The notes under the pieces were generated by a model. It was not told the DNA's origin. It made no database searches and saw nothing but the letters and a program-made list of their open reading frames with translations. DNA of 64,000 nucleotides from Macrostomum lignano (Eukaryota): assembly GCA_002269645.1 (NCBI GenBank), contig NIVC01001233.1, positions 1-64,000 on the forward strand. Reading direction: 5' to 3'. Positions 4,833-47,757 of the stretch are shown here, in pieces. A program made the translations under genes and the position numbers. Position 1 is the stretch's first letter, and the number at the start of each line of letters is the position of its first letter.

Positions 4833-4897
<65 letters not shown>

Positions 4898-4990: not shown

Positions 4991-5474
4991 CAACCAAATA
5001 GGAGCTTCCTTCACTTTTCCCATTCGTCTCGGGAGCAGTAACAAAGCAGGCAGTACATGCATACAACTATTAATCCGATCAAATGGAAGTACTTCGTATT
5101 CAATAGTGCTAGTGAGTTGTGCCTGCAGCAATCACTTCAAGCAGTACATGTATTTGGCATCCAGATAGAGATAGTTAAGCATGCAAATAAAAAGATTTTT
5201 TGACCGCAATATTAAAATCACAGAGACAGTTAAAAACATTTTGTAAAACACGTCCAATAGAGCTTTTTCATTGTTTAGCTTTTTACTGAGGAATCGTTTT
5301 AATACTAGTGGAGAATGTCCTTGCTTACTTACTGCATTTGGGCATTAACACAGGTTGAAAAATATCCATTACGAGCTAAATTTAATCAATATGTAGAGTT
5401 GCATATGGGGCACATAGGGCTTGGGTTTTAGGTAGCATTAAGTTCCATGGGTTTTAGCTAACTTGATTTTCATG

Positions 5475-5900: not shown

Positions 5901-5986
5901 TCCACTGACATGGGTTATGATACAAATAGCTTGGGTTTCATGTGGCTTGGGTTTTGTGTGGCTTGAGTTCCAGTTTAGACAAAATC

Positions 5987-10805: not shown

Positions 10806-12756
10806 TTAGGCGGTTGGATCAGCGTAATCGCCTTCGCTCTTATCTCTGCCCTCACTCGCAGCCTCCCCCTCCGCCTCCTCCTCGGACTCTCCCGCAGCCT
10901 CCGCGCCGGCCTCATCGCCTTCCAGAAGCTTTTTAGACGAAGCGTCGGGCACCCACATGCCGCTATCGACGCAGCGTTTCATATGATAGCGCGCCTCATC
11001 TATGGGCATCTCGGCTAGGGTCTTCTGCAGCAGAGCAATGTCTTTGGACTCGAAGCAGGCCTTAAGCGAGTCGGGCAGGCTGTCGAACACTTCAACCGGG
11101 TCCAGGCCGCCGGGGCCCAGCCGGGCCTGGCGCTGTTCCTCCTCATATTCGCGCATGGCGTCTTCTAGGCGAGCTTTGGCCCGATCCTGGACCCGCTGTC
11201 TGCAAGGGAATTGAGTAGATGGGAAGAGCAGTTAGTGCTAATTAGCTAGGAGTATTTGGATTGAAATTTAAATTTGTGAGCGCGCAACACAGGTACTGTA
11301 AGCAGGCACGCAATCACACATGTTGAACAACGGGCCTGACTATCTTATCGACAGACATCCCTCTGCGAGCAGCTGTAAAGAGCTGGAAGAATGATGACCT
11401 GAGCCTCTTAAGGATCAGCGAGGGTGGCCGCCATCAACCTGAGGATCTGGTAGGTGTGCAGCATGCTGCCATCAACCTGAGGATCTGGTAGGTGTGCAGC
11501 ATGCTGCCATCAACCTGAGGATCTGGTACGTGTGCAGCATGCTGCCATCAACCTGAGGATCTGGTAGGTGCGCTGCCATCAACCTGAGGATCTGGGAGGT
11601 GTGCTGCCATCAACCTGAGGATCTGGGAGGTGTGCAGCATGCTGCCATCAACCTGAGGATCTGTGAGGTGCGCTGCCATCAACCTGAGGATCTGGGAGGT
11701 GTGCTGCCATCAACCTGAGGATCTGGGAGGTGTGCTGCCATCAACCTGAGGATCTGGGAGGTGTGCTGCCATGAACCTGAGGATCTGGGAGGTGTGCTGC
11801 CATCAACCTGAGGATCTGGTAGGTGTGCTGCCATGAACCTGAGGATCTGGGAGGTGTGCTGCCATGAACCTGAGGATCTGTGAGGCTGGTCATCCTGAGA
11901 ATCTGGCATAATGAGGGCAATAAAATTAGGTTTAACCAGTTCCTGTCCTGCTAATAAATCTGCAACAATAGGAAAAATTGACAATGTCTCACCTGAACGC
12001 GGCCAGCTCCTCTTCAAACGCCCGCATGTACTCGGGCTGGGGATCGCGCAGGCGGGCGTAGAACTGGCGCAGACAGTTGCGCGGATCGGTGCCCAGCTCG
12101 GCGCCGAGTTTCAGCAGGAACTGAAGGCAGATGCACTGCTTGGTAACGTATTCAAGCAGGCTGGCTTTCTCTTCAACTGCCAGATCGACGCACCACAGCA
12201 CCAATCGGTCGCAGGCGGCTTCGCAAACCAGATGCGGATGCTCCTCAAGAAATTGCTGGGCGTCATCAAATTTAGAGAACATGCCAAACTTTTTAATCTC
12301 TTTGTCGTATTTTTGTTTAAATTCTTCGAGATTTTTCCAAGTCTCCTCATCGGTGCGAGGCTTCGGCGGCTGGGCGGCCGCCTTATTAATAATTGTCCTG
12401 GTCTTGCCCTCCTTGCAGATGGTGTCGATGTTCAGCGGCTGAGACTTCTCCTTCTTGGCCAGCTCCTGGCGATGGGCCTCCAGCTTGCTCAGCCGGTCCT
12501 TGAGCTGGGCCAGCCTACTGGCAGCCGCTGAGTCTCCAGCATCTGCCTGACGCTGGGCCTCATCAATCTGGTTGGTGACCTGCTTCCATTCGGCTTCGAA
12601 GTCCGACTTCTCCTTGGCCAGCTCCTCCATGCGCTTGACTCGGGCCTCGTGGCGCCAGCGGAACAGCGAGGGCGTGTCAATATTCGGGTGAGTGTCGTCC
12701 TCGTCATCGGAGACCTCGATGTGGTCCCACTTGCTGTAGTTGATACCCTTTGACAT
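10806..12756 (-). CDS. CDC37: Hsp90 co-chaperone Cdc37; exons 12756-11993 and 11199-10806; ~385 aa
   Basis: Diagnostic N-terminus INYSKWDHIEVSDDEDDTHPNIDTPSLFRWRH with the CK2-site Ser, and C-terminal RLGPGGLDPVEVFDSLP..RYHMKRCVDSGMWVP. The phase-2 GT-AG intron (AG|gtgaga..ttgcag|A) keeps the frame. Confidence 0.97.
11428..11885. repeat. 31-38-bp minisatellite (gctgccatcaacctgaggatctgggaggtgt) in the CDC37 intron
   Basis: About 14 copies in two length variants. Confidence 0.92.
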
Positions 12757-16099: not shown

Positions 16100-19000
16100 C
16101 CACCAGAGTGAGGGGGTGGAGAATCGCCGCACTTGAAGTGCATGAATTGTACGCAAAGCCGATGTACAAGCGTCGCTTTCACAGGTCGCGAGTGGTGAAG
16201 ACTGGGGATTGTCTCATTGACCTGGCGTCCGAAGAGCAGGTTAGCTGGGGCGACTCCTGTCGAGCTGTGCGGCGTGCGCCGGTACGCGGCCAGGTATTCG
16301 TCGACAGCTGCCGTCCAGTCTTTGCCTTCGGTGACATCTGCGCGTATGGCTTTGTTGAGGCCCCTTGTTGCAGCGCTCGGTGGCTCCGTTAGCCTGCGGG
16401 TAGAGCGGCGTGATCCGACGATGGTGGACTCCTTGGTCTTTCAGGAAGCTGGTGAAATCCGAGGATGAGAAAGGCGGCCCGTTGTCGGTTGACACCTTGA
16501 GCGGCTGGCCGAAGATGCTAAACCACCGTCTGAGCACGCGTATGGTGGCGGCGGCCGTTGTGTCTGCCATAACTTCAACCAGCGGAAATCGAGAAAAGTG
16601 ATCGGTGCAGACGAGTAACGACTTTCCTTTGACGGGCCCTAGGAAGTCAAGGCCGAGATCGAGCCACGGCCCATCCGGCAGATCCGTCGGCTTCAAGGGC
16701 GTTGCCTTCGTAGTCGCCTCGCTGTTGCAGGCCGTGCAGCTGATGCAGGTGGCCACATGAGTCTCCACTGCCGAGCGCATGCCGGGCCACCACACCTTTG
16801 ACTGCAGGCGGTCTAGTGTCTTCCGCATGCCTTGGTGTCCTTGACAGGGCAGTTGAAGGCACCGGAACCGCAGCACCCCAGGCACGAACAGCTGGCTGCC
16901 GCGCAATAGGAGGCCATCGTGTTCCGACAGCTCGTGCCTGACGCCTCGGATGTCTTTTAGATCCGCTGCCAGTGCGAATGGCGCGGCATGCAGCCTGCAC
17001 TGTCGGGTCCTGCTTCGAAGCCGCCTTGATCGCTGATATGCTGAGAGACACCGGAGTCGCCGCCTGGATGACCATGGTAACGAACGCTGCGTCGGCCCGC
17101 TCGCCTCCGTTGTTTGGCGGCTGCGGTAGCGGTTGCCGGCTGAGCACGTCGGACGGGTTTCCGGCTCCGGGCTGGTAAACGACGCTGAAGGCAAGGTCTT
17201 GCAGTCGGAGAGCCATGTGTTCAATTCTGCGGCCGAGACCCATGCGGCCGAGATCCTGGGCTGAACATCGAGACGAGCGGTCTGTGGTCAGTTATGACTT
17301 TAAAGTGCTCACAGCCGCTGAGATAATGATGAAATTTTAGGCAGCCATACTTTACTGCGAGTGCCTCGCGCTCGGTCTGCGAGTACCGCTGCTCGGTGGC
17401 GCTGAGGCTGCGGCTCGCGTAGGCCACCGGTCGAATCGAACCATCAGGCTGCACTTGGGCTAGGATGACGCCGGCTCCGGTTGGACTGGCATCGACAATC
17501 AGCTGGGACTGCAGGTCTTTGCTGAAGAATGCCAGCGCCTGGCTACTGGCTATCGTGCGCTTGATGTCGATGAAAGCTGCTTCTTGATGGTCGCCCCACG
17601 TCCACTCTGCCCCGTGCTTTGTCAGATCTCGGAGCGGCCGTGCCCTGTCGGACAGGTTGCTAATGAAGCGAGCGACAAAGGTGACGAGGCTGACCTCGGT
17701 AGCGTTGGTCGGTCTTTAGAAGCAGTTAATGGCCGCCACCTTCTCTGTGCTGGGATGGATTCCGGCTGCTGTGAGGCGCATGGCGAGGAAGTCGACTTCT
17801 TGCTGCGCGAACCTGCACTTCGCCCTGTTGAGAGTGATATTGTGGTCTCACAGCCGCTGCAGACAGTCGCGCAGTCGCTGGTTGTGCTCTTCGACACACT
17901 TGGCGTAGATGAGGATGTCGTCGTGTACCTAGCGCACGCCGGGAGTCCGCTCAGAACAGTCGTCATCACGCGCTGCAGGATTTCGGAGGCTGACGTATAG
18001 CCCATGCAGAGGCGCCTCAGTCGCATAAGGCCTAGTGGCGTTGAGAAGGTCAAGAGCTCCCTCGAATCTTCGGCCACCTCGATTTGATGAAAGGCCTTGG
18101 CGACATCTAACTCTGAGAAACATCTCGTCCGTAACCTCCTCAAATGTGGGAATCGGTTGCTTCTCGGGAATCACGAATTTGTTGACCTCGCGGAGATCCT
18201 GGGTGATGCGGATTCCCTTGTCCCTTGTCGTCCTTTGGAACAGCCACCATTCTTGAGCACCATGCTGCAGGTCCGTGGACACGCTCGATGATGCCCTGAG
18301 CAAGCTGCTCTTCCAGCTCTTTTCTGACGGCGTCTCTGAGGTGCACTGGCACGCGTGACGGTGCTTGGCATGTTGGCGTGGCTTCGGGACGCAGCTTGAT
18401 GGTAACGCGGACGCCTTTGACGCAGCCGATGCCGTGGAACCTATCCTCGAATTCGGTCAGGGCGCTTTGCAGCTGCGGGTTGTCGGTCGGGTGCTGGTCG
18501 TTGATGCTTCGTGACCCGGTGAGACCTGCCACTAATACGGGTTGCTTGTTGGCTCCTGGGCCGACCTGTAGCATGCCGAGCTCGGTGCTGGTCTGTCTTC
18601 CGATGATGGGGTGCAGCTGCTTTTTATGATGATGAAGTTCGGCTGCAGCTTGTGCCCGTTTGCCGACACCATCAGCCTGGCTTGTCCCTCAACGGCCAGC
18701 GGTTGGCTTGCGCCAAGTGGGAAAACCCTTGTGCTGCAGGGCTCGATCCTGGTGCCCGGGTTGCTGATCCGCCTGAAGGTGCACAGGTCGAGCACGTTGC
18801 AGCTCGCTCCGCTGTCGATGAGCGCCCTGACTGCGTGGCCGTTGATGCTGATGACGAACTTTGCGCTCCCGTTCTTGTCTTCCAGCGTGCAGAACACTTC
18901 CTCGTATGACTGGTCGGTCGGTTCGTCCGAGTTGTGGCCAAGTGCGTTGATGCGCGAACGGCTACTGAGACAAAGCCTTAGCGAGGTGGTTCATCTTGCC

Positions 19001-19135
19001 ACAGCTATCGCACTTCTTGCCCTGGGCCTTGTTGCAGCTTCGGTGTCCAGACTCTCCGCAGCGGATGCATTTGCTGTTAGTCTTTGGCGGCTCGCGGGCT
19101 GACCCACCTGGCTGCTTCCTGAGGGCAAGGCCGAT
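16100..19135 (-). mobile_element. Decayed Ty3/Gypsy retrotransposon internal region (gag C-terminus, protease, RT, RNase H, integrase) with frameshifts and stops
   Basis: Zinc knuckles CIRCGESGHRSC and CDSCGKMNH (~18975-19070); protease LIDSGASCN (~18800-18825); RT VHGPAAWCSRMVAVPK, ELDVAKAFHQI, TFSTPLG, *VHDDILIY; RNase H VDASPTG..VAYASRSL..YSQTEREALA..TDHRPL; integrase HQGM..WWPGM..CISC, LGLDFLGP, TDNGPPF, ERCN. Domain order PR-RT-RH-IN. Confidence 0.93.
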
Positions 19136-19860: not shown

Positions 19861-20561
19861 CGACGGTGCTTATCTTATTATAGACTGTTTGACAAAGTGA
19901 CCAAGCGAGTGTCCCCTCCATTTGTGGATGAGTTGACGAAATGGCAGTTGACGCAATGACTAGGATCCGAAAAAATCTGTCTAGGATCCATTACGTCTAC
20001 ACTGAATGCAAGGACCTTGACTAAATTTTGTCCTTTAGGTTTCTGCGCTTTATACAACAGCGTGAGTTCGAATGTTCCTTTTCGAGCTACAGTCCAGAGT
20101 GCGACACATTACTCATAAATTCTCGCCGTTCTACTTTTTAATTTCATTGTGTTTACAACCTGAAGCAAAACACCTATTTTTTGGACGTTATTTCAAACAA
20201 CCAAAAAACGGAATTTCTCTAAGTAACAACCTTGTAAAATGAATTGCCGACAAGCGTATCATCTCTCATCATTGGCATACAGTTTCGAGGGCATTCGCAT
20301 TCTTGCTTGTTTTTGGGGGGTAGAGCGAAGAACGCGGACCATCTTTTACTTTGTGGCAGGCCTGTCTGTCTAGCCCTCGCCCACGCTTAATAGCATGTCA
20401 ACTATTACTTCAATTGGGGGAGGGGCAATGCCACACTTGCTTGGCTATAAATATACCGCTCTGCAATCAATCCTCCATCCCGCTAAAAACGAGAGTATTA
20501 CCCAAAATTCGTGCTGCTACCTGTCGATAGACTAAGAATTACAGCCATATCAAATACAGTC

Positions 20562-21412
20562 ATGAGTTCATTTCCGTTGCTGAAGAATTGCACCGAAAGC
20601 CAACTGCAAATCCTCCGGGACATGTACGGCAGCGTCTGTCTGGAGGGCGGTTTCTGTCAGGTGACAATTAAAGCTTGAATAATTAGTGATAATCTAACAA
20701 TTATTACTCGCAGGGGAGTTGTAAGAACCCTGGCCCTTTCTGCTGACTCCTGAACACGTCATACATGCACACACGCTCACACAGGATGCACCACGGCCCT
20801 GCCTTTCTAATCGTCATGCAGGCATGTACACTCTGTGCCTTGGAGGTTGGCCCTCATGCTTGTGAATCGCTCAAAACCCCTGGCCAATTTTTCGTACTCA
20901 AAGCCTCAAATTAAGATGAGTGTGCACCGCGGAATCGAACCAGGGGTCGTGGTACGAGAGGCAGCTAGCAAATACCTTTACCTCTGAGCTGCTCCGGCAC
21001 CAAAAATTAGTGTTTTTTATCTGCTAACGGTAACTATCATATAATTGTCCAATTTCACTTGCATCATCGCCTTTAGGCTCTGACAAAAGTGAGAGTCTTC
21101 TGCCAGTGCCCGTCGGGCTGGACCGGGGACGTCTGTGACGAGCCCGACTACGTGCCCATGGTGGGCGCCAGCCTGTCTCAACCGACCCCGAGCGGCTGGC
21201 CGGTTCTGCTCATCCTGGCCGCTGCTGCTGTGCTGCTGGCCCTGCTGGCAGTGGCTTCCTTCGTAGCTGTTTCTATGGCAACTAAGCGACGCCGGCGGCA
21301 CATCGAACTGCTGGTAGCCAGCTCAACCAGCAGCCTGGAGAATGCGGGCAGCCACAATCTGCAATTCGATCAGCTCATTATCGGCGCTGAAGGCGCTCAG
21401 TTGAAGTCCTGA
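20562..21412 (+). CDS. EGF-domain single-pass membrane protein, copy 1; exons 20562-20660 and 21077-21412; 144 aa
   Basis: MSSFPLLKNCTESQLQILRDMYGSVCLEGGFCQ|ALTKVRVFCQCPSGWTGDVCDEPDYVPM, followed by a hydrophobic TM (VLLILAAAAVLLALLAVASFVAVSMA) and the basic stop-transfer KRRRR. Phase-0 GT-AG intron; TATA-like tataaata at ~20446. Confidence 0.85.
20712..21000 (-). mobile_element. tRNA-headed SINE family 2, best-preserved copy, inside the intron of EGF-TM copy 1
   Basis: On the minus strand: A box agctcagaggtaaagg, B box ggttcgattcc, then the body shared with three other copies. Confidence 0.72.
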
Positions 21413-23758: not shown

Positions 23759-24556
23759 ATGCGAATGACGGTGCCACCGATCACGAACTGCACAGACCGG
23801 GAGCTGACGATACTCGTCGAGCTGTATGGCGGCTTGTGTCAGGAAGGCGGACATTGTCGGGTAAGGACTGCGCAGCTGCCTTAGAGTCCCTGTAAACTGG
23901 GAGTTGAAGGCAATCTACGAGTACAAGTACGACCCTTGAGGCAGAGTAGCTCAGTGGTAAATGCATCTGACTTTTTTTCTCGGCCACCCTTAATTTGGGT
24001 TTATCACACAAATATTGGCGTGGAGATTGCCGGGCAGTTCAACCCCTCGAGGAGTTACAAAGACATGTGCAGTACTTGAAGATGTAAAAGTCTGGATCAA
24101 AGTGTACTACTATGCTACACACCCTAATGAATCCGTGAACAAGTCAGTGGAATTGACATTCTGCTCATCTCCTCGCTAGCTGAGGGGCTAGCTACAGTCA
24201 TTTGTAAGCCAACTAGATAACCAAAGCAACCATGATAACCGATTCCAACCCTATCTTTATTCAAGTCGATTCCTCCGGGACGACTTTTCTGCCAGTGCCC
24301 CACCGGATGGACGGGTGACCTCTGCGACGAGCCGGACTACGTACCCATGGCCAGCTCCGGAGCCGGCCTGAGCGGCCTGCTCTCAATAGTCCTTGTTGCG
24401 GCCTTCCTGCTAGCTATCGTGCTGTTCATAGTTGCCGGGGTGGTCCTTTACCGGCGCAGTCTCAATCGTCACCGCCGTCGCCGACGCCACGAGCCTCAGA
24501 GGGCCGATAAAGCCGAGAGTGTCGCCGTCCTGCCCGTAGAGGAGAATGACACCTGA
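23759..24556 (+). CDS. EGF-domain single-pass membrane protein, copy 2; exons 23759-23860 and 24266-24556; 130 aa
   Basis: MRMTVPPITNCTDRELTILVELYGGLCQEGGHCR|SIPPGRLFCQCPTGWTGDLCDEPDYVPM..LLSIVLVAAFLLAIVLFIVAGVVLY-RRSLNRHRRRRR. Cys spacing and intron position (gtaagg..ttcaag) match copy 1. Confidence 0.83.
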
Positions 24557-25559
24557 CCTAATTGTTATTAATGTACAATCGATTTATCCTATGGCAGTCT
24601 ACAATATTTATCTCATCGCTTTTAGATGTTATTTTTGCAAGATTCTGTACTGATTTGACAGTTTGTATTTATATTATTTTCTGGCTCTTTTTGACTTTGG
24701 AACTCATATTTTACTGAAGTTTCTTTTTACCGTGACTTTTCTACGAGTACGTAAGCCCCGAGTTGCTTGATTTCACTTAGGCGGCCTCCATGTTTGAGTT
24801 CACTGCGGTACACAGCTATGCAAGTGCTGCTATCTTTCCCGTTTATCTTTTACTACGGGCAAACTTTTTTCTGTATATTGCAGTTTAGGGTGCTGCAAAA
24901 AAGTTTTCCAGTTAGAATTTCTCCTTCAGAAGGCCTGTTAATATCCCATGTGTTTGCTCTTTGAGAGCAATTCATCGACTTTAAAAGTAACACGAATTTG
25001 TTTTTCTAGTGAGGTCCCTGGCTTACTGTAACTTCTTCACGAAATATTCGCACTTACTCGAGTATCTCTGAATTTTGATTCTCTTTCTGCATACTGCCTT
25101 TACTTTACTAAACTCGACTGCATTGAGTAATATGGAGCTTGGTGATAGCATTCAAGTAAAATCGAAATTGGCTTTGACTTACGGTCTCATACCTTGTGCC
25201 CTACAAACTGTAAATTTATGAACCTCAGACGTGGGCACAGGCTCCAAGCTCGTCTGTTACAGACGTCGTCGAATGGCTCTGTCCATTGCCTGCATTCATG
25301 GCTTACTCAAGCAGTGCTTCAGACTGCGGGACCGATACTAACAATAAAGCCTAAGGTTTAACACCCTGAGAATTAAAGACAGGTTGGCGTAAGTCGTAAA
25401 GCTTCCTCTGGAAGGCGATAGCAGTGAAGCTTGCCACAAGCTCTACCGTGGCTCGAAAGGCTGTCAGCAGTCTAAGTGTTCAAAATTTTGAAGGACAGCA
25501 TCAGCGGAATAGTCTCAGAGAGCCTCGATGCGATTTTAGCAGTCTTCGGTCTCGATGCG

Positions 25560-26490
25560 CTACTTGGGCAGGGGACGTGACCAGGCTGCGGGTGAGCTGG
25601 CCAGCTCTTCCGAGGCGGACATTGAAATTTGGTGGCTCGCTTTGGAGTCCCACAGTCGGTGCACACTGATCAGGGTCGGAACTCTCGGAGTCGCAGCTGT
25701 GCAAGAGACGATGAGAGTACTGAAGATCGACAAGACTCGGACGACAGGCTACCACCCTGAAGGAGAAGGCGGTTGCGAACGGATGAACCGGACGCTGGTG
25801 CAGCTGCTGCGAGCATGGGTGAACGAGAATCAGCGAGACTGGGATCTTTATCTGCAGATTGCACTGATGGGCTACCGCACTTCAGTCTACATGTCGACTG
25901 GTCAGACATCTTCGGCCGGGAACTGCGGCTGCCACTGGACTTGGCATACGGAGGTTTGGCGCTGGATGCGCACCGTCCTTGTGAATGAGTGGCCGAGCTG
26001 CGGAGCCGGCGCGACAAAACTTGGAGGCAGCGCAACTGTGCCAGAAGGCAGCGTAAGACTGGAGGTGCCACGGCGAGGCATTCAGGGAGGACGATCTGGT
26101 CTGGCAGCACAATCAGGCGCTGAAGCGAGGCGAGAGTCGCAAATTTCATCGATGTTGGACTGGGCCTTGGCGCGTTAAAAAGCAGATCTCGGATGTCACC
26201 TACCGCATTCAGCCCGAGGCCAATGCACGAAAGCAAAGGGTCGTGCATTTTAATCGCCTGCAGCCCCTCAATTGCAGCCAGCGGCGCAACCGCACAACTC
26301 TGACGAGGACGACCTGAGATTTGACGGCGCCCCAGTCGGCGCCCCAGTCGGCGCCCCAGTCGGCGCCCCTGCTAATGTTCAAGCGCATTCAGAACAGCCT
26401 GTATTGTGTCGAAGTGAGAGGGCCCGTGCCCCACCAGAATTTTATGGTGAAGTGTATACTGACACTGACACTATTGACATTGCTTGAGTT
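25560..26490 (+). mobile_element. Decayed Ty3/Gypsy integrase remnant (different family from 16-19 kb)
   Basis: Frameshifted motifs FGVPQSVHTDQGRN, KTRTTGYHPEGEGGCERMNRTL, DWDLYL..ALMGYRTSV, FGRELRLPLDL, WTGPWRVKKQISDVTYRI, VVHFNRL. Confidence 0.85.
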
Positions 26491-27575: not shown

Positions 27576-28303
27576 ATTAAGCCATTTCCGAGACTTCAGA
27601 GTCTCCCCGCTCTCGGACCGCTTATCAGTAGTAACCCAAGCATTTTTCATTCCAATTCTTTTTTCGCGCACTTCCGGGACTTATCTGCTGGGTGGTGGCC
27701 TGAGTGGACTCTGTCCTAGCACCGTCCCTGATTCCACTTTTGGGTTGGCGGTGTCTTAGCCCATAGGCTTGGGTTAGTAGCTCCAATGCTCCATGCTCTC
27801 CCCAGAGTCCTGAGCTCTGGTTCCAATAGTGGCCTCTCGGGCTTAAAGCCCCCTGGTAGTATGGCCCACAGCTAGATCCATGCGGCAGAGCCCCCTAGGG
27901 CTGATCCGTGGGCAGCGCTTCTCCTCCCACCCCCGTTTAACAACAAGCAACCTTATTCGAGTTTTTTTGGGCTACTTTGTACAACACAGCTTGTAAAGTA
28001 AATTACTGACAAGCATATCTCTAATCATTCGCATATAGTTGCGTGGGCATTCGCACCGAGGGTAGGGCGAAGAACGCGGACTGGCGGCTTTTACTTTGTG
28101 GAAAATCTGTCTGTCTAGCCCTCGCCCACGCTTAATTAGCACAGTGTGAACTCTGTTACTTCAATTGGGGGCGGGAAAGTTTCACTGGCAAATATGTCAC
28201 TCTGCCATGCAATCCTCCATCCTGCTAAAAGCGAGAGCATTACTTAAACTTCGTGTCGCCACCTGTTGATGGACTAACAAGTGAAAGCCAACAAGCGCAA
28301 GTC

Positions 28304-28729
28304 ATGAGTACATTTACGCTGCTGAAGAATTGCACCGAAAGCCAACTGCAAATCCTCCGGGACATGTACGGCAGCGTCTGTCTGGAGGGCGGTTTCTGTC
28401 AGGTGAAAGTTTGCATAATCGGCCAGGCGCTGACAAAAGTGAGAGTCTTCTGCCAGTGCCCCTCGGGCTGGACCGGAGACGTCTGCGACGAGCCGGACTA
28501 CGTGCCCATGGTGGGCGCGAGCTCGGCGCGGACTATGAATAGCGAAACCGGACTTGGCTTCGGCTGGCTCATCTGTCTGGTGGTGACGGCAATGCTGCTT
28601 GCCCAGCTCTTTGCCGTCATCGTAATGCTGATTTTTAGCAGCCGTCGACGCGGTCTTGGATCGTTGAAAGGCGCCGAAGCCAACCAAAAACAGCCAACGG
28701 AAGCTTCGGCCCTGAGACTATGCAGATAG
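28304..28729 (+). CDS. EGF-domain single-pass membrane protein, copy 3; 141 aa unspliced or 133 aa if 28403-28426 is spliced
   Basis: The EGF module is identical in amino acids to copy 1, followed by a different TM (GWLICLVVTAMLLAQLFAVIVMLIF) and SSRRR. A 24-nt GT..AG segment sits at the homologous intron position. Confidence 0.85.
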   Translation: MSTFTLLKNCTESQLQILRDMYGSVCLEGGFCQVKVCIIGQALTKVRVFCQCPSGWTGDVCDEPDYVPMVGASSARTMNSETGLGFGWLICLVVTAMLLAQLFAVIVMLIFSSRRRGLGSLKGAEANQKQPTEASALRLCR

Positions 28730-30087
28730 AAACGAAAAGAGACCTATTGATTAGTGCGCAGCAGCTAGATACGTGATTCGCACTAAATATGGAATAACAG
28801 TTTGCAAAGTCCGCAGTCACTTGCTTATCGGATCTTCGTCAAGAACTGAGGGTAAAACTCTGGGTGTAGGTACTCGTATTGGCAGGGTTCTTTTATTTTT
28901 ATGTGTGCCTACTCAAAATATAATCGATAGCCATCGGTAAATATTGTCGTAACCTCGGCCTTGGGTGACGAGTTCTCAGGTGTCTAAATCGTAAATACCT
29001 GAGATTTTTTAACTTATTTTACAATGACTGGGTCGTCAGCACTGTTTAGTCAGTACATGCAATTCTGGTAACTATAATCAGGCAAATTATTCCTGATGAC
29101 AATTTTGGGTTTCTGGCATTTGACTGTCATCAATTTGACCACCTGAACTGGACTGAAGACCCTAACCAAATCCCTGACCAAAACTTAAATCTGACAGTCA
29201 GATGTCACTGGCACTCCAATGTCGCTGGCACTCAAATATTACTGCTGCGGCATGAGCAGCGACGAAAACGTTGAATTATTTGTGAAAATGAACATTTTTG
29301 TAATTTAAAGTATTATAAACAGGCAAGAACTATGCGATAATTATCTTCTTATTTCGATGATATATCTTTTCACCATTTTCTACCCGTATTGTTGCACAAA
29401 ATTGTCCTTAAAATGTTTTTAATTTGTAGCAGTATTAAAGTAATGAGGCGTAAAGGCGATGGTTCTTTATTTTGCTTCGTTATTGATAATCGAGATTTCG
29501 GAAAAACTTGATTATTAGCTAGATTTGCTTGGTTTATAGAAAATTAACGGTGTTCTGGAACTTTCTTTAAATTATAACAAAGATACGGTTATTATAATAT
29601 GTACTGTAATTAATAAGGGTAAATGCGTTAAATAATAATATGGCTAATAATTAAAGTATAAGTTATGTAAAGTTTAAACGTAGAAATATTTTGCTATAGA
29701 AATTCGCGGAAAAATGGGGAAATCTTATATACTAAAGTTGAGTTTGTTTGTTTGTTTGTTTGCTTGTAACAGAAAATCTTGCGAACGGAATGACCGATTT
29801 TCTCCGTTTTTGCACCATTAGATGGCAAATTGTCCGGAATCGGTACACGTATTTTTAATAAGCTATCCAAATTAAAGAGGCCTCTTAATTGTCAGAAAAC
29901 AGGTTTTTGCCCATCTCGCTAATGTATTTTTTCGGCAGTGAGAGCTTGCAAACGGTTTTGGCCATAGATTATAATGCTAATAGCTGTAGGCTGCTTGGTT
30001 TTTATGTAGCCCACTGCTTCCTTTCCTTCTTTCTTTTCTTTGGTTTTTGAACCCTCTAATAGTGCTTTATCTATTTAGCCCCACTGT

Positions 30088-30579
30088 ATGATGGTGCGCC
30101 GTGGCGCAAGCCATTTGAAGAGAAGCCGTGACGCAAAGAAAAGACGACTGGCCGAGTCTGCTGGAGAGCGCGATGCCCGTCTGGAAGAGCAGCGGCGGCG
30201 AGACGCCGAGCGCCGCGCTGTTGAAGACGAGGCTGAGCGGTTTGTCCGTCTGGAGGAACAGCGGCAGAGACAGGCTGAGTGTCGCGTTGCTGAAGACGAG
30301 GCTGAGCGGATTGCCCGTCTGGAGGAACAGCGGCAGAGACAGGCTGAGTGTCGCGTTGCTGAAGACGAGGCTGAGCGGATTGCCCGTCTGGAGGAACAGC
30401 GGCAGAGACAGGCTTTGTTTCGCGCTGCTGAAGACGAGGCTGAGCGGATTGCCCGTCTGGAGGAACAGCGGCAGAGACAGGCTGAGTTTCGCGCTGCTGA
30501 GGACGAGGCTGAGCGGATTACCCGTCTGGAAGAGCAGCGGCAGAGACAGGCTGATTGTCGGCGCGGTGAATCTGTATAA
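30088..30579 (+). pseudogene. Truncated Helitron ORF consisting only of 23-aa STPR-like repeats (163 aa)
   Basis: Repeats of EDEAERIARLEEQRQRQAECRVA. It has one unit fewer than the copy in Helitron 2 and stops at the deletion junction GESV*. Confidence 0.7.
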
Positions 30580-30614
30580 CTGCGAGAGTATCGCTCAGTG
30601 GACAGCGTGGACAG

Positions 30615-30930
30615 TGTCAAGGCCTACTGGGGGAATTGTGAGAAGTCAAGACTTACTGGAGGAATTACTGAGATTTCAAGGCTTACTGGGTGGAATTGCT
30701 GAGTTTTCAAGGCTTAATGGGGAATTACTGAGATGTCAAGGCTTACTTGGGGGAATTGCTGAGTTTTCAAGGCCTACTGGGGGAATTCTGAGAAGTCAAG
30801 ACTTACTGGAGGAATTACTGAGATTTCAAGGCTTACTGGGGGAATTGCTGAATTGTCAAGGTTTACTGGGGGAATTACTGAGATGTCAAGGCTTACTGGG
30901 GAAATTATTGAGATTTCATCAAGGCTTATG
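30615..30930. repeat. ~30-bp minisatellite (caaggcttactgggggaattactgagattt) inside Helitron 1
   Basis: About 10 degenerate copies; a single related agatttcaaggct occurs near the 3' end of Helitron 2. Confidence 0.8.
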
Positions 30931-31590
30931 GCATATTGAGCTCCTGCTGCGGACCAGAATATGCCCAGGCCAATGACGATATGCCCTAAGAGTTTGTGCT
31001 TGAAAGGATAAGTACTATTTGCTGAATGAGAAAGGGTTTTGGGCTGATGAAGGAAACTTTGGCTGGTGAAGGTTTTGATTCATGGCAATTTTTTTGCCAA
31101 AAATGAGAAAAAGTAAGTTTTGATTAATGGATTTTGAATAATAAGTAAGGTTTTTACTCATTGGCCAAAATAAAAACCACTTGGCGTCATTCTTGCGCCC
31201 CCCAACGGGGGGCTTAAATTGCTAGTCTTATATACTAAAGTTGAGTTTGTTTGTTTGTTTGTTTGCTTGTAACAGAAAATCTTGCGAACGGAATGACCGA
31301 TTTTCTCCGTTTTTGCACCATTAGATGGCAAATTGTCCGGAATCGGTACACGTATTTTTAATAAGCTATCCAAATTAAAGAGGCCTCTTAATTGTCAGAA
31401 AACAGGTTTTTGCCCATCTCGCTAATGTATTTTTTCGGCAGTGAGAGCTTGCAAACGGTTTTGGCCATAGATTATAATGCTAATAGCTGTAGGCTGCTTG
31501 GTTTTTATGTAGCCCACTGCTTCCTTTCCTTCTTTCTTTTCTTTGGTTTTTGAACCCTCCAATAGTGCTTTATCTATTTAGCCCCACTGT

Positions 31591-33806
31591 ATGATGGTGC
31601 GCCGTGGCGCAAGCCATTTGAAGAGAAGCCGTGACGCAAAGAAAAGACGACTGGCCGAGTCTGCTGGAGAGCGCGATGCCCGTCTGGAAGAGCAGCGGCG
31701 GCGAGACGCCGAGCGCCGCGCTGTTGAAGACGAGGCTGAGCGGTTTGTCCGTCTGGAGGAACAGCGGCAGAGACAGGCTGAATGTCGCGTTGCTGAAGAC
31801 GAGGCTGAGCGGATTGCCCGTCTGGAGGAACAGCGGCAGAGACAGGCTGAGTGTCGCGTTGCTGAAGACGAGGCTGAGCGGATTGCCCGTCTGGAGGAAC
31901 AGCGGCAGAGACAGGCTTTGTTTCGCGCTGCTGAAGACGAGGCTGAGCGGATTGCCCGTCTGGAGGAACAGCGGCAGAGACAGGCTTTGTTTCGCGCTGC
32001 TGAAGACGAGGCTGAGCGGATTGCCCGTCTGGAGGAACAGCGGCAGAGACAGGCTGAGTTTCGCGCTGCTGAGGACGAGGCTGAGCGGATTACCCGTCTG
32101 GAAGAGCAGCGGCAGAGACAGGCTGATTGTCGGCGGGGTGAATCTGTCACCAGGTTACCTTGTGTCGAATCTATTGTGCCCTTTAGTCAGTTGCAGGTCA
32201 ATACCACCATTGGCGATGGCAACTGCTTTTTTCATGCCGTGTGCGACCAGCTACGTGGCACACCGCATGAAACCGATGCCGCTACCCTTCGGCACGAGTT
32301 GGCCTGTCGTGCAGTTGAACTTTTGCCACAGTTGGTCGCGAATGGCATCATCGCGCCTGATTGCGCCGATGAGATTGCGAATTCCTCCTTTCAGGAAGGG
32401 GTTTATATTTCAGACGAAGTGGCAGCTCTGTTTAGTAGCTGCTTTGACATGGACCTGGTGATTTACCAGTCCAATGGTAATGTGCTGCAATATTTCAAGT
32501 GTGACAAGCAGCCTCCCAATGCCACTGTGTGTGTGCTCTTGAGTCACGAGCACTACGAGTCGCTCAGACTTCGACCGTCTCTGCAAGCTTCTTCAGGTGC
32601 AGAGTGTCCCAGGCCAATGGCAAGCGGCTCAAAGGCAGTGCCAGTTGACATCCACAGCTCATGTGCCGACATTGGAGCATCGGGTGATCATCGGTGAGTC
32701 TTCTTCATTTGTCTTTTTGATTTGAACTGCTGTCCTCACAACATGTCTTATTCCACTGTACTCACAGGCGTGCCGAGCCATTGCTGCCAGAGGCCCCGGC
32801 TCACCAGTGTGGACCAATGAACAACGCCTGCAATGACTGTGGCGCATTGTTTTGGGCCAAAGAGACGCGCAACTTCTGCTGCGCCAAGGGCAAGGTGAAG
32901 CTGCCCACCCGTACGATGCCGCAGGTCTTGGCAGATCTTTACACGGGGCAGCACCGACTCAGTGCAGAGTTCCTGGCCCACATCAGGAGCTACAATGCGG
33001 TGCTGCACCTCACATCTCTGGGTGTGAAGCTCAGAATGGTGCCTGGCTATAGTCCCAGCTTCATCATCAGCGGCCAGCTGCATCACAATATGGGGCCGCT
33101 GCTTGCCGACCCCTCAGCCGAGCCGCATGGCTGGCAGGTGTATTTTACTGACCGCGAATTGGAGAGCCGCCTGAGCCTCAGTCAGAGAGTGAAGCCGGAG
33201 CTGCTAAAGCTGCTGCAAACTCTGCTGCATCAATCCAACGGCTACGTGCAAAGCCTTCGAGCTGCTGTTCAGCGAATCAGTGGCGACCCTGAGCTGGGAG
33301 ATGCGCGAATTGTGATTCACCCGGACCGAAGACCAGCAGGGGAACACATTCGGTGAGTTTGTGGTGTCAAAATAAACTATGATGTATATATTGTATATAT
33401 ACATGATACAATATATAAAAATATAAAAATATGATTTTTCCTCAGGCGCTACAATCTTCCTTTGGCCAATGAGGTTGGCATTCTTATCGTTGGTGGCACA
33501 GAGGACGCAACGACAAATCGTGACGTTGTGATCCGACTGCGTGGTGGCCAAGTCCAGCGCATAGCCGAGACGCACCGGTCCTATGACCCTCTGGAGTACG
33601 TGCTGCTGTTCCCCAATGGCGAGGACGGCTGGCACCCGGAGCTGAAGATGGCGAATGGGCGGACGCTGACGCCCATGAAGTACTACGCCAGCGAAATCAT
33701 GGTGCGAGCTGGCCAGTTCAATGTGCTGCACCACGGCAGGCGTCTGTTCCAGCAGTACCTGGTGGACATGGCTGCCAAGATCGAGTCCGAGAGGCTGCTG
33801 TACGGT
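31591..33806 (+). pseudogene. Helitron RepHel N-terminal part: STPR-like repeats + OTU cysteine protease + Zn-binding CxxC..CC motif + pre-Rep region; exons 31591-32693, 32768-33352, 33446-~33806; truncated before the Rep motifs and helicase
   Basis: OTU motifs GDGNCFFHAV and HEHYESL; CNDCGALFWAKE..FCCAKGKVKLP; HIRSYNAVL; R|RYNLP..NEV; SYDPLEYVLLFPNGEDGW; LFQQYLVDMAAKIESERL. Two in-phase GT-AG introns of 74 and 93 nt. Confidence 0.9.
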
Positions 33807-33811
33807 TGGTA

Positions 33812-33881
33812 TTAGGGTTTAGGTTTAGGGTTAGGTTCAGGGTTATTGCGTTAAGGTTCGGGTTAGGGTTAGGGTTAGGGT
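33812..33881 (+). repeat. Interstitial degenerate (TTAGGG)n tract
   Basis: ttagggtttaggtttagggttagg...gggttagggttagggttagggt; a second short tract lies at ~34036-34058. Confidence 0.75.
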
Positions 33882-35541
33882 AGCTTATAACTTGGCTCAT
33901 TTAGCTTATTAAAAATGTTTATCATGGAAGCATCATGCAAAAATAATGGAAGCGTCATGCAAAAACAATGGAAGCGTCATGCCAAAAATCATAGAAGCAT
34001 CGATCATGCAAAAACTCATGGACAAAATATTGAATTTAGGGTTTTGGTTAGGGTTAGAATTTTGACAGGAGATTTTTTAAGATTTCAAGGCTACATGTAG
34101 CTTATTAAAAATACGTGTATTGCATTTCTTTGGCTCCCCAACGGGGGGCGTAGATTGCTAGTATCTTATACTTAATTTGGAAATTTTACTCGTACGAGCT
34201 ATAGAATGCGCGAAGGGGAAAAGGAAACTTCTAGAAGCCAGGTACGTTGGAATAACATTGCAACAAATTTAAGTTTTTTTTTTAAAAAGTCGTAGAATAA
34301 AAGGAAAATATTATTTTCAGAATAGCGAAAGCATACTTTTCATGAAAACATTTTGACTCGTCTCATAAATGAACTCAATTAATGTTTCGGAGCTGGCCTC
34401 GGAATAAAATAATTTGTTTAGCTAAATAATATACATACTAGCGTAATAATGATGCTCTTACTAAAAAAGTTACTACAAATTCTCCAATTTTTCTTGCTTG
34501 TGATCGACTTTAAATTTGAAAACTGGATTGCCCTGTCGCATTTTGATGAAATCTTCAAGTTGTATGTGTTATGACATTGATCTGATCTAGGATTTGTATT
34601 GTTACCCGTTGAATACATTTTGCGAATGCGACGTGCAAACAATTTATCTTTACGTCGCATGTTCGGGCGGTGGCATCACCAAATTTTCTGGCGCAATGCC
34701 AATGGATTAGGTAGGAGAGCCAAATAAAGAGGCAGAATCCTCACCTTGCATTTGCTATTGGCATCGCGCCAGGGGGGGGGGTACCGCTTGCGGATGCCGC
34801 TGCCCTGTCTGGGTGTAAGTTGCATATCCGGGAAAGCCTCCCAGCAAAGCAGAATTAACTGGCAGAAAGATATTTGCTAGACAGAAAAATCTTCAATTTA
34901 GCCAAGAAACTTTAACTAACAAGAATTATAATAAACTTCCAACTACAATGCTTTCTGCTTCGAACCTTAAGCCCGTGCAGATGCTTAAATACTCGTAAAA
35001 CAACATGTGTTTAATTTCCCATTCTAAATCTTATTCAGCGGCTTCTCTCTGATTTTCCCAGATCCCAAAAGAAGCGCATCTGGGCCAAAGGATGTCCAGT
35101 CGGAGTTTCAAGTCAAATCCAATCGGGTTTGAATTTGAAATCTAGTCTATTCTAGTTCTAATCTAGTCTAGTTTTTTTATCTAGTCTATACTTAATGTCT
35201 AGACTCGAAATTCCGAATGGAAAAACCCTGCGTGAAAACCTCGGCGAGACATTTCATTCTAATAGGAGCATCAAATTCAGGTGGCAAAATCAGATGCGTA
35301 TTGATTATTTGAGAGAAGACAATTATACTCGTAGTATACCATGACTGCATTGTGAATGTCTTTTTTGTTACTTTGCTTAGCCTTTGCAGTCTATGGCCCA
35401 TAGACTAGCCAAGACAACAGCCAAGGCCCTTCAGTCACAGTGTGCACTGTTGGCTAGAATTTTATAAATTCCTTATAAAGCGCGTATTAAATGCTAATTT
35501 ACCATTTTCTTCCTATATGGTTTTTACTGCGTCCAATTGAT

Positions 35542-38219: not shown

Positions 38220-38948
38220 TCACGCGCAGGTCAGCACACAGCCTCCGTGAACCGGCTCGCTCAGTGCTGTCCACGAGATAAGCGGCTGCTGCTGCTGCTG
38301 CTGGCCGCCGAGGCTCAGGCTCAGCGACACCACCGGCTGACTGCGGCTCAGCCGGGCAGCCTCTGCCGGGGACAGGGGAATGATGGAGATGCCGATGCTC
38401 GATGCTTGGTCCGTCACCTGTTGCTGCTGCTGCTGCTGTTGAGTTCCGTGTTCCAGGTAAGGCCGCTTGCCGGGTTCCGATCCTGCAGCTTCGTTGTCGA
38501 TCGCAATTGAAGCAGACCGCTTCAGTTTTTGCCTTCGTAGTTGCTGCTGTTGCCGCTGCCGCTGCTGCCGCTGCTGATGCTGCTCCAGATTTTGCTGCTC
38601 CAGCTTCTGCTGCTCCAGCTTCTGTTGCTCCATCTGCTGCTGCTCCAGCTTCTGTTGCTCCATCTGCTGCTGCTCCAGCTTTTGCTGCTCCAGCTGCTGC
38701 ATCTGCTGCTGCTCAAGCTGTCTAGCCTGCTGTTGCTGCATCTTAGCAGCCAGCAGACTGTCTCGCGCTTTACACAGCGTGTTGGCTAGAAGAAGATTCT
38801 GTCTAAGATCAACTCCACCTTTCCGTCTGCGAGAATCACCGATTTTTGCGACTGACCATTGCAAGATCTTGTAGGCAAACTCAGGCTCTACCTCCGAGTT
38901 GTTTTGGCCAGCTGAAAGGGCCGTCTGCTGCTCCGACTGCTGCTGCAT
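38220..38948 (-). CDS. Immediate early response (IER2/IER5-like) family protein, single exon, 242 aa, Gln-rich
   Basis: EFAYKILQWSVAKIGDSRRRKGGVDLRQNLLLANTLCKARDSLL aligns by eye with the IER N-terminal motif (EAQRIMxLSVWKMYxSRxQRGGxxLHRSLxLSLVMRSARELY). It is followed by (LEQQK/MEQQK) repeats, polyQ and basic clusters (KLKR, KRPY). Confidence 0.7.
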   Translation of the reverse strand: MQQQSEQQTALSAGQNNSEVEPEFAYKILQWSVAKIGDSRRRKGGVDLRQNLLLANTLCKARDSLLAAKMQQQQARQLEQQQMQQLEQQKLEQQQMEQQKLEQQQMEQQKLEQQKLEQQNLEQHQQRQQRQRQQQQLRRQKLKRSASIAIDNEAAGSEPGKRPYLEHGTQQQQQQQQVTDQASSIGISIIPLSPAEAARLSRSQPVVSLSLSLGGQQQQQQPLISWTALSEPVHGGCVLTCA

Positions 38949-39029
38949 TGCTGCTAATCTTTTAGGTCCTGTCGCAAGCGTAGCGCAAACTTTGAAAGGC
39001 CTTGTGGCCAGTTCCCTTAATCGGCTAGC

Positions 39030-39108
39030 TTTATATCTCTGACGCGGAGCTTTGGCTTGATGTGCGGCACAGATGCTAAATTTAGCTCAAGCCAACTGCA
39101 CTGAGTCA
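39030..39108 (-). promoter_or_regulatory. Proximal promoter of the IER-like gene
   Basis: TATAAA at 39030-39035 (82 nt above the ATG), CRE-like TGACGC at 39040-39045 and a perfect AP-1 site TGAGTCA at 39102-39108. Confidence 0.55.
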
Positions 39109-42385: not shown

Positions 42386-42753
42386 GTTACTTTTGTTTTG
42401 TTTCCGCCATCGGACACTTTGTTTGCTTTTAAATATTCCAGTGGCCCTGAGATATAAAAACACATTGAATTGGGCGAATTCTCATTTAGATCGTCAAAAG
42501 CAATAGCAATTCAGCTCTTGCTCAGAACGCGCCGGGTGAGTGAGAGAGCGAGCTTCCCATGGAAGTCTAGTTCTCAAGAATGAAATGCAATGCAACATGG
42601 AAATGCGCGCTTGTTCCTATGTCCGGTCAGGATTCTGAGAGCCTGTTATGGACAGTGAAGTACAGTGTGCACTTATTCCAAAGTCGGGAAGAGCTGAATG
42701 CAAGCTAGAATATTCAGAAAAGAACATCGACAGCTATTAGTTCCACCTTCCAG

Positions 42754-43984
42754 ACCAGCTCCCCAGTGATTGGATTGAGAACGGCAGTGAGAGCATCGGG
42801 TATCGCGACGGCGTCAGTGATGACAGCAACAGCCTGGGTGTCCGGCTATGCCAGCTGGCACTAGTAGCCGGCAGCACTGTACTCATTGTACTCACATTTC
42901 CTCTGTCCGTATGGCTCTGCGTTCGAGTTGTGCAGCAGTATGAGCGGGCCGTAATTTACCGGTTTGGACGCGTTCGCGGAGCCAGAGGTGAGCTCATTGG
43001 TGAGTAATTGATAAATCTGGATAACAACAGCTATAAAACGCCACCTTGCAAGGCCCGGGCTTGTATTTCGTCCACGCGCTGATCGACAGCGTTCACGTGA
43101 TGGACCTGCGCACAGTGACGTTCAACATTCCACCGCAGGAGATTCTCACTCGCGACTCCGTCACCATCTCGGTAGACGCAGTTGTCTACTACCGAATATT
43201 CGACCCGGTGAAATCCAGCGTTGTAGTGTGCGACGTCCATCGGGCGACAAGGCTGATGGCGCAGACAACGCTGCGCAACACGCTGGGCACCAAGTCACTG
43301 CACGAGATTCTCAGCGAGAAGAGTGCCATCGCGCTGGCCATGCAGGATAGCCTGGATGCTGCCACCGACCCGTGGGGAGTCAAGGCGAGTTGGGGAGCAC
43401 AATGCCTTTCCCAGAGTCTGATGAGTAGTCAAAGCAGCAGAAAGTTTCAATAAAATCTTGTGTTGGCTTTGAAATCTCTTGCCAAACTATGTAATATACT
43501 GTACGAGTTAGACATTAACTATAACAATTTTATGGGAAAAATAACTCTGATCCCTCATTAATAGACTTCTTTGAGTTTAGGAGCTTACAAGTGTATTTAT
43601 CACTCTGTACTACTGTTAGCAATCTAGCATGCATTTTCATCCTCTTCAATGCCTCTTGCATGTCAGGTAGAGCGAGTCGAAGTCCGGGACGCTCGCCTGC
43701 CCGTGCTGATGCAGCGCGCCATGGCTGTAGAGGCGGAGGCGCAGCGCGAAGCGAACGCCAGCGTGATCGCAGCGGAGGGCGAGCTGACGGCCGCCCTGAC
43801 GTTACGCGAAGCCGCTGCGGTCATCGGGCGCACGCCGATGGGCGCGCGGCTTCGCTACCTGCAGACTCTGGGCGCCATCGCGGTGGAGAAGCAGTCTACC
43901 GTCCTGTTTCTTATGCCCCTCCAGTTGATGTTGGATAAAAAGGCGTGCCAGGCTGTCGAGGCCATGCAGATGGAGGCTGACTGA
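42754..43984 (+). CDS. Stomatin/band-7 (SPFH) family protein; exons 42754-42987, 43053-43384, 43667-43984; start exon not resolved
   Basis: LCQLALV..VLTFPLSVWLCVRVVQQYERAVIYRFGR..G|PGLYFV..DLRTVTFNIPPQEILTRDSVTISVDAVVYYRI..AQTTLRNTLG..WGVK|VERVEVRD..QRAMAVEAEA..A.VI.AEGE..LRYLQTL. The first acceptor needs a phase-1 upstream exon (candidates near 42620-42655). Confidence 0.9.
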
Positions 43985-46984: not shown

Positions 46985-47269
46985 GGTGCCTGTGATGCTC
47001 TGGAATGCGCTGTCGTTCTGTTTGAGGCGGTAGTACCAGCTGAATAGGGTGACGCAACACTGCAGCTGGAGAGGGTGGTTATAATTTGAGCCGGTCATGA
47101 GTTTTGAGGATATTTTTATTCCCCACATTTGCAAAATCATTTGTTTTATTTGAGAGCAGACTCCAAAATCAAAAGTCATGGTAAAAATTGAAGCGAATAT
47201 GCATGTAGATGCCGCACATAGGGTTCTACCTCACTTGTACAAGTGACGTACTAGAATCCTTTAGAACTA

Positions 47270-47757
47270 GTATCTCTTGGTGCTAGTATCTCTTGGTGCT
47301 AGTATCTCTTGGTGCTAGTATCTCTTGGTGCTAGTATCTCTTGGTGCTAGTATATCTTGGTGCTAGTATCTCTTGGTGCTAGTATCTCTTGGTGCTAGTA
47401 TCTCTTAGTGCTAGTATCTCATGGTGCTAGTATCTCTTGGTGCTAGTATCTCTTGGTGCTAGTATCTCTTGGTGCTAGTATCTCATGGTGCTAGTATCTC
47501 TTGGTGCTAGTATCTCTTGGTGCTAGTATCTCTTGGTGCTAGTATCTCATGGTGCTAGTATCTCTTGGTGCTAGTATCTCATGGTGCTAGTATCTCTTAG
47601 TGCTAGTATCTCTTGGTGCTAGTATCTCTTGGTGCTAGTATCTCTTGGTGCTAGTATCTCTTGGTGCTAGTATCTCTTGGTGCTAGTATCTCTTGGTGCT
47701 AGTATCTCTTGGTGCTAGTATCTCTTATTGCTAGTATCTCTTAGTACTGGTATCTCT
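47270..47757. repeat. 16-bp minisatellite (tgctagtatctcttgg)
   Basis: About 30 highly similar copies, ~290 bp upstream of the GPCR ATG. Confidence 0.96.

Follow-up and report, generated by a model that had tools for sequence, protein, structure and literature searches.

This study concerns a 24-nt segment within the third of three tandem genes that are predicted to encode small proteins with one EGF-like domain and one transmembrane (TM) helix in the flatworm Macrostomum lignano. The genes lie in a stretch of 64,000 nt (bases 1-64000 of contig NIVC01001233.1, assembly Mlig_3_7, GCA_002269645.1; hereafter the window), and the segment (GTGAAAGTTTGCATAATCGGCCAG, 28403-28426, forward strand) sits in copy 3 at the site where both paralogues have introns. 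We find that these 24 nt are very probably the stump of an ordinary 347-nt spliceosomal intron, left behind by a 323-nt deletion in one version of the locus. A second contig of the same assembly retains the intron in full, and alignment with it shows that the short state arose by deletion, that the long intron is the ancestral form and where the deletion junction lies.

Origin of the 24-nt segment

Copy 3 can be read as an uninterrupted open reading frame (ORF) of 141 codons on the forward strand (28304-28729; ATG at 28304, stop TAG at 28727-28729). It is preceded by a region homologous to the copy-1 upstream region (27990-28303, forward strand), a putative promoter and 5' untranslated region. 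Coding exon 1 (28304-28402, forward strand; 33 codons, MSTFTLLKNCTESQLQILRDMYGSVCLEGGFCQ) supplies Cys1-Cys3 of the EGF-like domain, and coding exon 2 (28427-28729, forward strand) supplies Cys4-Cys6, a juxtamembrane stretch, the TM helix LICLVVTAMLLAQLFAVIV, an Arg-rich stop-transfer sequence and a short tail. The segment between them has GT..AG ends (GTGAAA...GGCCAG) and lies at the phase-0 site of the paralogue introns. The frame stays open across it because 24 is a multiple of 3 and the stump holds no stop codon, giving the translation ...GGFCQ-VKVCIIGQ-ALTKVRVFCQC....

The two paralogues, also on the forward strand, have ordinary introns at this site. Copy 1 (20562-21412; 144 aa) consists of exon 1 (20562-20660), a 416-nt intron (20661-21076, GTGACA..TTTAG) and exon 2 (21077-21412, stop TGA at 21410-21412). 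Copy 2, an older paralogue (23759-24556; 130 aa), consists of exon 1 (23759-23860), a 405-nt intron (23861-24265, GTAAGG..TCAAG) and exon 2 (24266-24556, stop at 24554-24556). Both encode an EGF plus TM protein, and in all copies the intron follows the homologous codon in phase 0, between FCQ and A or between HCR and S.

The protein encoded at 38220-39062 of the window is recorded on two Mlig_3_7 contigs, NIVC01001233.1 and NIVC01003547.1. The former matches the window with 100% identity over 28220-49062, with equal coordinates in both; a stretch of the latter, the sister contig (L003), was fetched. L003 is colinear with the window for more than 3 kb on each side of copy 3. Pairwise alignment shows that its copy 3 has a 347-nt intron with GT..AG ends (L003 16221-16567, corresponding to NIVC01003547.1:30158-30504, minus strand), while codon 3 (ACA in the window, TCA in L003) is the only point at which the contigs differ in exon 1 and in the EGF-coding portion of exon 2. 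The 24-nt segment is composed of the first 9 nt (GTGAAAGTT) and the last 17 nt (TTTGCATAATCGGCCAG) of this intron, which overlap by a 2-nt TT. Relative to the L003 intron the window thus lacks exactly 323 nt, and both exons are untouched. The junction falls within the TT at 28410-28411, so that 7-9 nt at the 5' end of the intron and 15-17 nt at its 3' end were spared.

The end points of the deletion bear no relation to the splice sites. Owing to the TT overlap, the 323-nt piece can be placed in three equivalent registers, starting with TT, TA or AC and ending with AT, TT or TT, respectively. None of these is GT..AG, and the deleted piece is therefore no product of splicing or of recombination with complementary DNA (cDNA). 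Loss through a messenger RNA (mRNA) intermediate, as in a processed retrocopy, would likewise leave one paralogue without an intron that the others possess, but such loss is precise; here, 24 intron nucleotides remain, no register of the deleted piece has splice-site ends and the flanks are colinear for kilobases, which rules out a retrocopy or cDNA-mediated intron loss.

The intron state is one of many differences between the two contigs, whose substitution divergence is 1.75%. An interval of 3.6 kb around copy 3 contains 63 substitutions as well as nine indels of at least 5 nt (6, 6, 7, 20, 23, 24, 27, 105 and 323 nt), and kilobase-scale insertions or transposable-element differences also separate them (e.g. 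window 29740-34162).

Three lines bear on which state came first. In copies 1 and 2 and in the sister copy 3, the same codon is followed by a phase-0 intron. Moreover, nearly all of the L003 intron can be aligned with that of copy 1, in blastn blocks of 74-79% identity that include the flanking exons and in a global alignment with 63% identity over aligned columns. Finally, copies 1 and 3 differ over codons 1-65 by seven synonymous and two non-synonymous changes (synonymous divergence, dS, 0.185; non-synonymous divergence, dN, 0.013). Its homology to the copy-1 intron marks the long intron as ancestral, since copies 1 and 3 split far earlier than the two contigs. Copy 3 thus had the 347-nt intron before the contigs diverged, and the 24-nt state is therefore a recent derived deletion. 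The reverse course, a recent insertion of the long intron into an ancestral 24 nt, is rejected by the same homology to the intron of a copy that split off earlier.

According to this interpretation, a single 323-nt deletion would have taken the interior of the intron in one of two approximately 98%-identical versions of the locus in the DV1 line, from which Mlig_3_7 was built. The two versions would be either alleles or recent homeologues; M. lignano has been described as a hidden polyploid (PMC10468722), and DV1 has extra copies of a large chromosome (PMC5730564). The joining of two TT dinucleotides is as expected for end-joining repair or replication slippage, and it is from this junction that we infer the repair mechanism.

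The original prediction, made from the window alone, had placed the segment at a conserved intron site occupied in copies 1 and 2 by introns of 416 and 405 nt, and had stated that its retention gives VKVCIIGQ and a seventh cysteine; the shared codon and phase confirm the former, and translation, which meets no stop, confirms the latter. It had also noticed that the segment ends resemble intron ends, including a partial match between TTGCATCATCGCC in copy 1 and TTGCATAATCGGCC in copy 3, and this observation is now sharpened, since all 24 nt are identical to the ends of the 347-nt sister intron. Its statement that most differences between the flanking exons and those of copy 1 are synonymous agrees with the counts given above. 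It had, however, treated the segment as a fixed feature of copy 3, whereas we find a very recent deletion in one of two 98%-identical versions, the other of which keeps the 347-nt intron.

The predicted protein and the state of the gene

Any transcript of copy 3 would most likely include the stump as exon, because both branch-site-like motifs of the intron have been lost and the remainder is shorter than any known class of flatworm intron. The read-through product would carry VKVCIIGQ inserted in the hairpin between Cys3 and Cys4, with an unpaired seventh cysteine.

No hydrophobic signal is seen at the N-terminus of the predicted copy 3 protein, which has a single EGF-like cysteine pattern and, ahead of an Arg cluster, one strong TM stretch, LICLVVTAMLLAQLFAVIV (Kyte-Doolittle mean of 2.8 for its best hydrophobic 19-mer). 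It is thus predicted to be a small membrane protein that lacks a signal peptide and has its N-terminus outside. Without the eight residues the protein has six cysteines in its EGF-like domain and scores above the cut-offs of Pfam EGF (PF00008; 22.3 bits, cut-off 21.5) and EGF_2 (PF07974; 22.3 bits, cut-off 22.1), similar to copy 1 (EGF, 22.0 bits) and copy 2 (EGF_2, 24.0 bits). With the eight residues these scores fall to 17.1 and 14.8 bits, respectively. Most probably the insertion is neutral or does mild damage, against which the intact sister copy and paralogues 1 and 2 would act as a buffer. Mutations that leave an odd number of cysteines in EGF-like repeats, for example those of NOTCH3 in cerebral autosomal dominant arteriopathy with subcortical infarcts and leukoencephalopathy (CADASIL), promote mispairing or aggregation. 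The retained product would similarly have seven rather than six cysteines in one EGF-like domain; unlike in NOTCH3, the extra cysteine would come within an eight-residue insertion and in a small single-EGF membrane protein.

A short precursor in which one EGF motif precedes one TM helix is also the plan of EGFR ligands such as Spitz, Keren, TGF-alpha and planarian egf-1 to egf-5, and it agrees with the permissive definition of EGF-type ligands applied to flatworms; M. lignano has eight EGFRs (PMC4914847). The EGF domain itself departs from these ligands: the Cys1-Cys2 spacing of copy 3 is 15, not about 7, its C-loop reads PSGWTGDV with no Arg before Cys6 (GDVC), and the top sequence matches in the PDB are Notch1 EGF repeats (E 5e-5), followed by an EGF/TGF-alpha chimera (1e-3) and NRG1 (0.02). 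EGFR/ErbB ligands have the motif CX7C..., with an Arg before Cys6 and a Leu after it. A specific assignment as an ErbB ligand is not supported by this spacing, by the missing Arg or by the PDB matches, and the domain appears to resemble Notch-type repeats at least as much as ErbB ligands. The earlier suggestions that the new cysteine rewires EGF disulfides and falls within an ErbB-ligand range must therefore be regarded as speculation, given also the lower Pfam EGF score with the insertion. A word-indexed search of 5.8 billion proteins returned no match for relatives of these proteins, and an exhaustive HMMER search of 1.84 billion representatives returned only generic multi-EGF proteins; the three tandem genes thus appear to encode small proteins, each with one EGF domain and one TM helix, that lack detectable relatives beyond the generic EGF motif.

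The relationship between the copies is uneven along their length. Copy 2 is separated from copies 1 and 3 by a dS above 1. Between copies 1 and 3, homology begins upstream of the genes (27990-28406 against 20231-20664, 79% identity by blastn, supported by a three-way alignment) and stops at 21172 and 28522, after the residues GAS (codon 65); they are 90% identical up to there. In exon 1 they show four differences, which comprise non-synonymous changes at codons 3 and 5 and a synonymous change at codon 6, the fourth being the first base of a two-base change at codon 5. Past codon 65 they cannot be aligned as DNA or as protein, and each still has a TM helix and an Arg cluster. This pattern suggests that the genes are of chimeric origin, or that gene conversion long ago affected only the stretch that runs from the upstream region through exon 1 and the intron to the middle of exon 2.

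A possible alternative, which we consider doubtful, is that copy 3 is expressed from neither contig, in which case the deletion would be neutral decay of a dying paralogue with no consequence for RNA or protein. Neither contig carries a gene model at copy 3, although this is weak evidence because the GenBank annotation also misses an intact 542-aa G-protein-coupled receptor (GPCR) and a stomatin-like gene in the same stretch. Exact look-up of six protein forms (isoforms and paralogues) found none among approximately 15 billion catalogued proteins, and the word-indexed and HMMER searches gave no homologue. Furthermore, copy 1 has a TATA box (TATAAAT, 20446-20452, ~115 nt upstream of its ATG) and an AATAAA signal 227 nt past its stop codon; a scan for both signals at copy 3 found neither in either contig, the counterpart of the TATA box (28190-28200) reading GGCAAATATG within ~330 nt of upstream sequence that is otherwise conserved in blocks.

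Divergence of the coding sequence can be read both ways. Since the contig split, the coding sequence has gained six non-synonymous and one synonymous difference (window 28304-28729 against L003 15921-16666), at a rate of 1.64% that is close to the 1.75% of the flanks. These differences are unevenly placed, however: five non-synonymous and the one synonymous change fall in the last 35 codons and the remaining non-synonymous change in codon 3, such that codons 4-98 are identical where five differences would be expected (P ~0.007; non-synonymous sites alone, P ~0.02). The codons that tell the two alleles apart are 3, 99, 102, 115, 121, 124 and 131, with GTA at codon 99 and ATT at codon 102 in the window. 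Over a longer time, dN/dS between copies 1 and 3 is ~0.07 over the ectodomain, with two non-synonymous changes seen against ~14 expected under drift. The ORFs are intact on both contigs, and all three copies still encode an EGF domain followed by a TM helix and an Arg cluster, despite the unalignable tails of copies 1 and 3. The claim that the gene appears functional, as it had been put in the original prediction, was based on the divergence from copy 1, which records the long-term history of the lineage and not that of the deletion allele. The open frame of the stump was also considered as a sign of selection and rejected: in simulated deletions that leave a small stump of the 347-nt intron, ~32% are in frame and free of stops.

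Assembly and splicing alternatives

Several points weigh against the interpretation of the segment as a recently made, unspliced stump. Both states are known from assembled contigs of Mlig_3_7 alone, and an assembly error in the window contig is an unlikely but real concern. A microhomology of 2 nt does little to single out one repair pathway. Flatworms, M. lignano included, have a class of microintrons shorter than 75 nt, often without a polypyrimidine tract (PMC6530080), and their spliceosome accordingly tolerates short introns, while our view that the stump would be retained rather than spliced is drawn from its signals and size. At the protein level, an AlphaFold2 model of the retained isoform, made from a three-sequence alignment, has a mean predicted local distance difference test score (pLDDT) of 51.5, with the TM helix alone confident, and is too poor to speak to a structural effect of the insertion.

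An assembly artefact would mean that DV1 has the long-intron form only and that the 323-nt gap arose in PacBio assembly or consensus of the window contig. A single assembly stands behind the 24-nt form, the long-intron version of the same gene occurs within it, and that assembly is redundant and difficult, with duplicated blocks of at least 95% identity totalling 180 Mb (PMC5730564). Against this, the contigs were separately assembled and are diverged, as judged from their substitutions, the eight other indels of at least 5 nt and the kilobase-scale transposable-element differences, and the ends of the gap are clean, show microhomology and have no errors nearby. Long-read consensus errors are typically indels of one to a few nucleotides and not clean losses of 323 nt. 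The original prediction had named genomic reads with a longer intron as the sign of an assembly error; this sign is half present, since a longer intron does occur in Mlig_3_7, though on another contig that has diverged from that of the window. Taken together, we consider an artefact improbable.

Two further alternatives concern splicing of the deletion allele. The 347-nt intron holds two branch-site-like YTRAY motifs, with the branch A at -38 and -57, both of which lie inside the deleted part, and no YTRAY motif is found in the 24-nt stump. The stump keeps the GT and CAG termini of a U2-type intron, which agree with M. lignano splice sites (GT[G/A]AG and CAG; PMC8629364), except that its donor, GTGAA, is off this consensus at +5. 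Regarding length, the mean M. lignano intron is ~1.1 kb (PMC5730564); the M. lignano genome papers give means only, and a species-specific minimum was not found in them. The mode of flatworm microintrons is near 37 nt, a figure from Opisthorchis (PMC6530080), and the shortest intron that can be inferred in the window, on homology reasoning alone, is 65 nt (42988-43052). The stump is shorter than both.

In the first of these alternatives, which we regard as very unlikely, the donor at 28403 would be used with a cryptic exonic acceptor (CAG, 28454-28456), excising 54 nt in frame and thereby removing VKVCIIGQ and ALTKVRVFCQ, Cys4 included. A scan for downstream AG dinucleotides does find such a site (...GTCTTCTGCCAG followed by TG) at 54 nt in frame 0 with a pyrimidine-rich run before it, and 54 nt is within the flatworm microintron range. 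Nevertheless, this is a possibility read from the nucleotides, the branch-site consensus was looked for in that stretch and none was found, and the product would lack a structural cysteine.

In the second, which we judge highly improbable, the spliceosome would still remove the 24 nt through the retained GT and AG, leaving the protein unchanged. The termini are intact, the exon sides of both junctions are unchanged and, as noted above, flatworms splice microintrons that often lack a polypyrimidine tract. The stump also falls inside the range of known ultra-short introns, which measure about 25 nt in Paramecium and 22-27 nt in myxobolid myxozoans and are found also in Dicyema (PMC5014332, PMC13644364), with medians of 22-27 nt in some animals (PMC13644364). 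Among the 51 metazoan genomes compared, however, introns below 30 nt are confined to myxobolids and Dicyema japonicum, where introns have shrunk throughout the genome and splice motifs are reduced (PMC13644364). Unlike these genome-wide systems with adapted signals, the M. lignano segment is a single remnant of a long intron that has been stripped of its branch-site-like motifs, has an off-consensus donor and is shorter than the flatworm mode and the shortest intron of the window. Of the two options in the original prediction, an ultra-short intron or an exonised remnant, the sister contig supports a remnant at the conserved intron site, and the deletion of the branch motifs speaks against a working ultra-short intron.

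Genomic surroundings and relation to known intron losses

The stretch around the EGF cluster is rich in mobile and repetitive sequence. The difference between the contigs at window 29740-34162, ~1 kb downstream of copy 3, is a 4.4-kb block with OTU-like and Helitron-like ORFs that has no counterpart in L003; this presence/absence insertion contains an 838-nt duplication (29723-30560 and 31226-32063, 98.8% identical). Broken integrase and reverse-transcriptase ORFs of the long terminal repeat (LTR) retrotransposon type separate Cdc37 from the EGF cluster (16241-19102, minus strand) and copy 2 from copy 3 (25555-26248). Minisatellites are dense in the window, with periods of 8, 16, 20, 23, 24, 31/38, 33, 44 and 69 nt (2398-2826, 4408-5975, 11411-11916, 47136-47853, 52383-53349, 57879-58574, 60058-61393 and 61882-62900). 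The array at 11411-11916 lies in a Cdc37 intron and its length varies by contig, the intron being ~790 nt in the window and ~620 nt in a third contig (NIVC01000352.1), which extends only to the position corresponding to window 16349 and contains none of the EGF copies. tRNA-like stretches such as GGCAGAGTAGCTCAGTGGTAAATGCATCTGAC are found in the introns of copy 1 (20915-20975) and copy 2 (23940-23975); they are the only parts of these two introns that match each other, in opposite orientation, which suggests that they are fragments of tRNA-derived short interspersed elements (SINEs). ARAGORN and Rfam made no call at these stretches, and Rfam and tRNA scans of the whole window were empty.

Other genes in the window include a Cdc37 exon (11989-12756, minus strand; 98% identical to a Macrostomum lignano protein), a stomatin-like gene (42741-43981, forward strand) and a rhodopsin-type GPCR encoded by an intact single-exon ORF (45551-47179, minus strand; 542 aa, Pfam 7tm_1, E 1e-51). 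The 65-nt microintron mentioned above lies in the stomatin-like gene on the forward strand (GTGAGC...TTGCAAG) and is inferred to join ...RVRGAR-G to PGLYFV. In this region the GenBank record lists only a 280-aa protein (38220-39062); the GPCR and the stomatin-like gene are uncalled, and the Mlig_3_7 annotation is thus sparse in this stretch.

The event in copy 3 matches imprecise intron loss by genomic deletion, a process described in fission yeasts, Drosophila, nematodes and plants (PMC3629103, PMC3296678, PMC9169325). As in those cases, an ancestral intron appears to have been deleted at points off the splice junctions, a few intron nucleotides are left, the frame and the exons are kept, and the junction shows short microhomology. 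It differs from them in that its stump keeps both GT and AG. Furthermore, the published losses are fixed between species, whereas in this case a single assembly contains both states, as haplotypes or as homeologues of a hidden polyploid, and the event may be seen here prior to its fixation or loss. Should mRNA retain the stump, the event would also match de-intronization, which has been documented elsewhere (PMC3629103, PMC9169325): intron sequence would become coding, as an in-frame insertion, once the requirements for splicing (branch site, minimum length) had been destroyed. In classic de-intronization the whole intron is retained after a point mutation, whereas only 24 of 347 nt are left here.

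In other respects the event is unremarkable as structural variation, and the gene family that it affects is small and lineage-specific. Anyone annotating the redundant M. lignano assembly should note that near-identical contigs may differ in gene structure; an ORF-based model of the window contig would yield an EGF domain with seven cysteines. Most reported intron losses are fixed species differences whose mechanism is guessed, whereas here the end points and the microhomology can be read directly because both states occur in one genome with identical flanking exons. The coexistence of the two states, together with the retained GT and AG, provides a ready-made test of minimum intron length, in which exonic single-nucleotide polymorphisms distinguish the two alleles. 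Were the stump to be spliced after all, it would represent a functional intron of less than 30 nt in a free-living bilaterian with otherwise long introns, one that arose in a single step and has its 347-nt control allele in the same animal.

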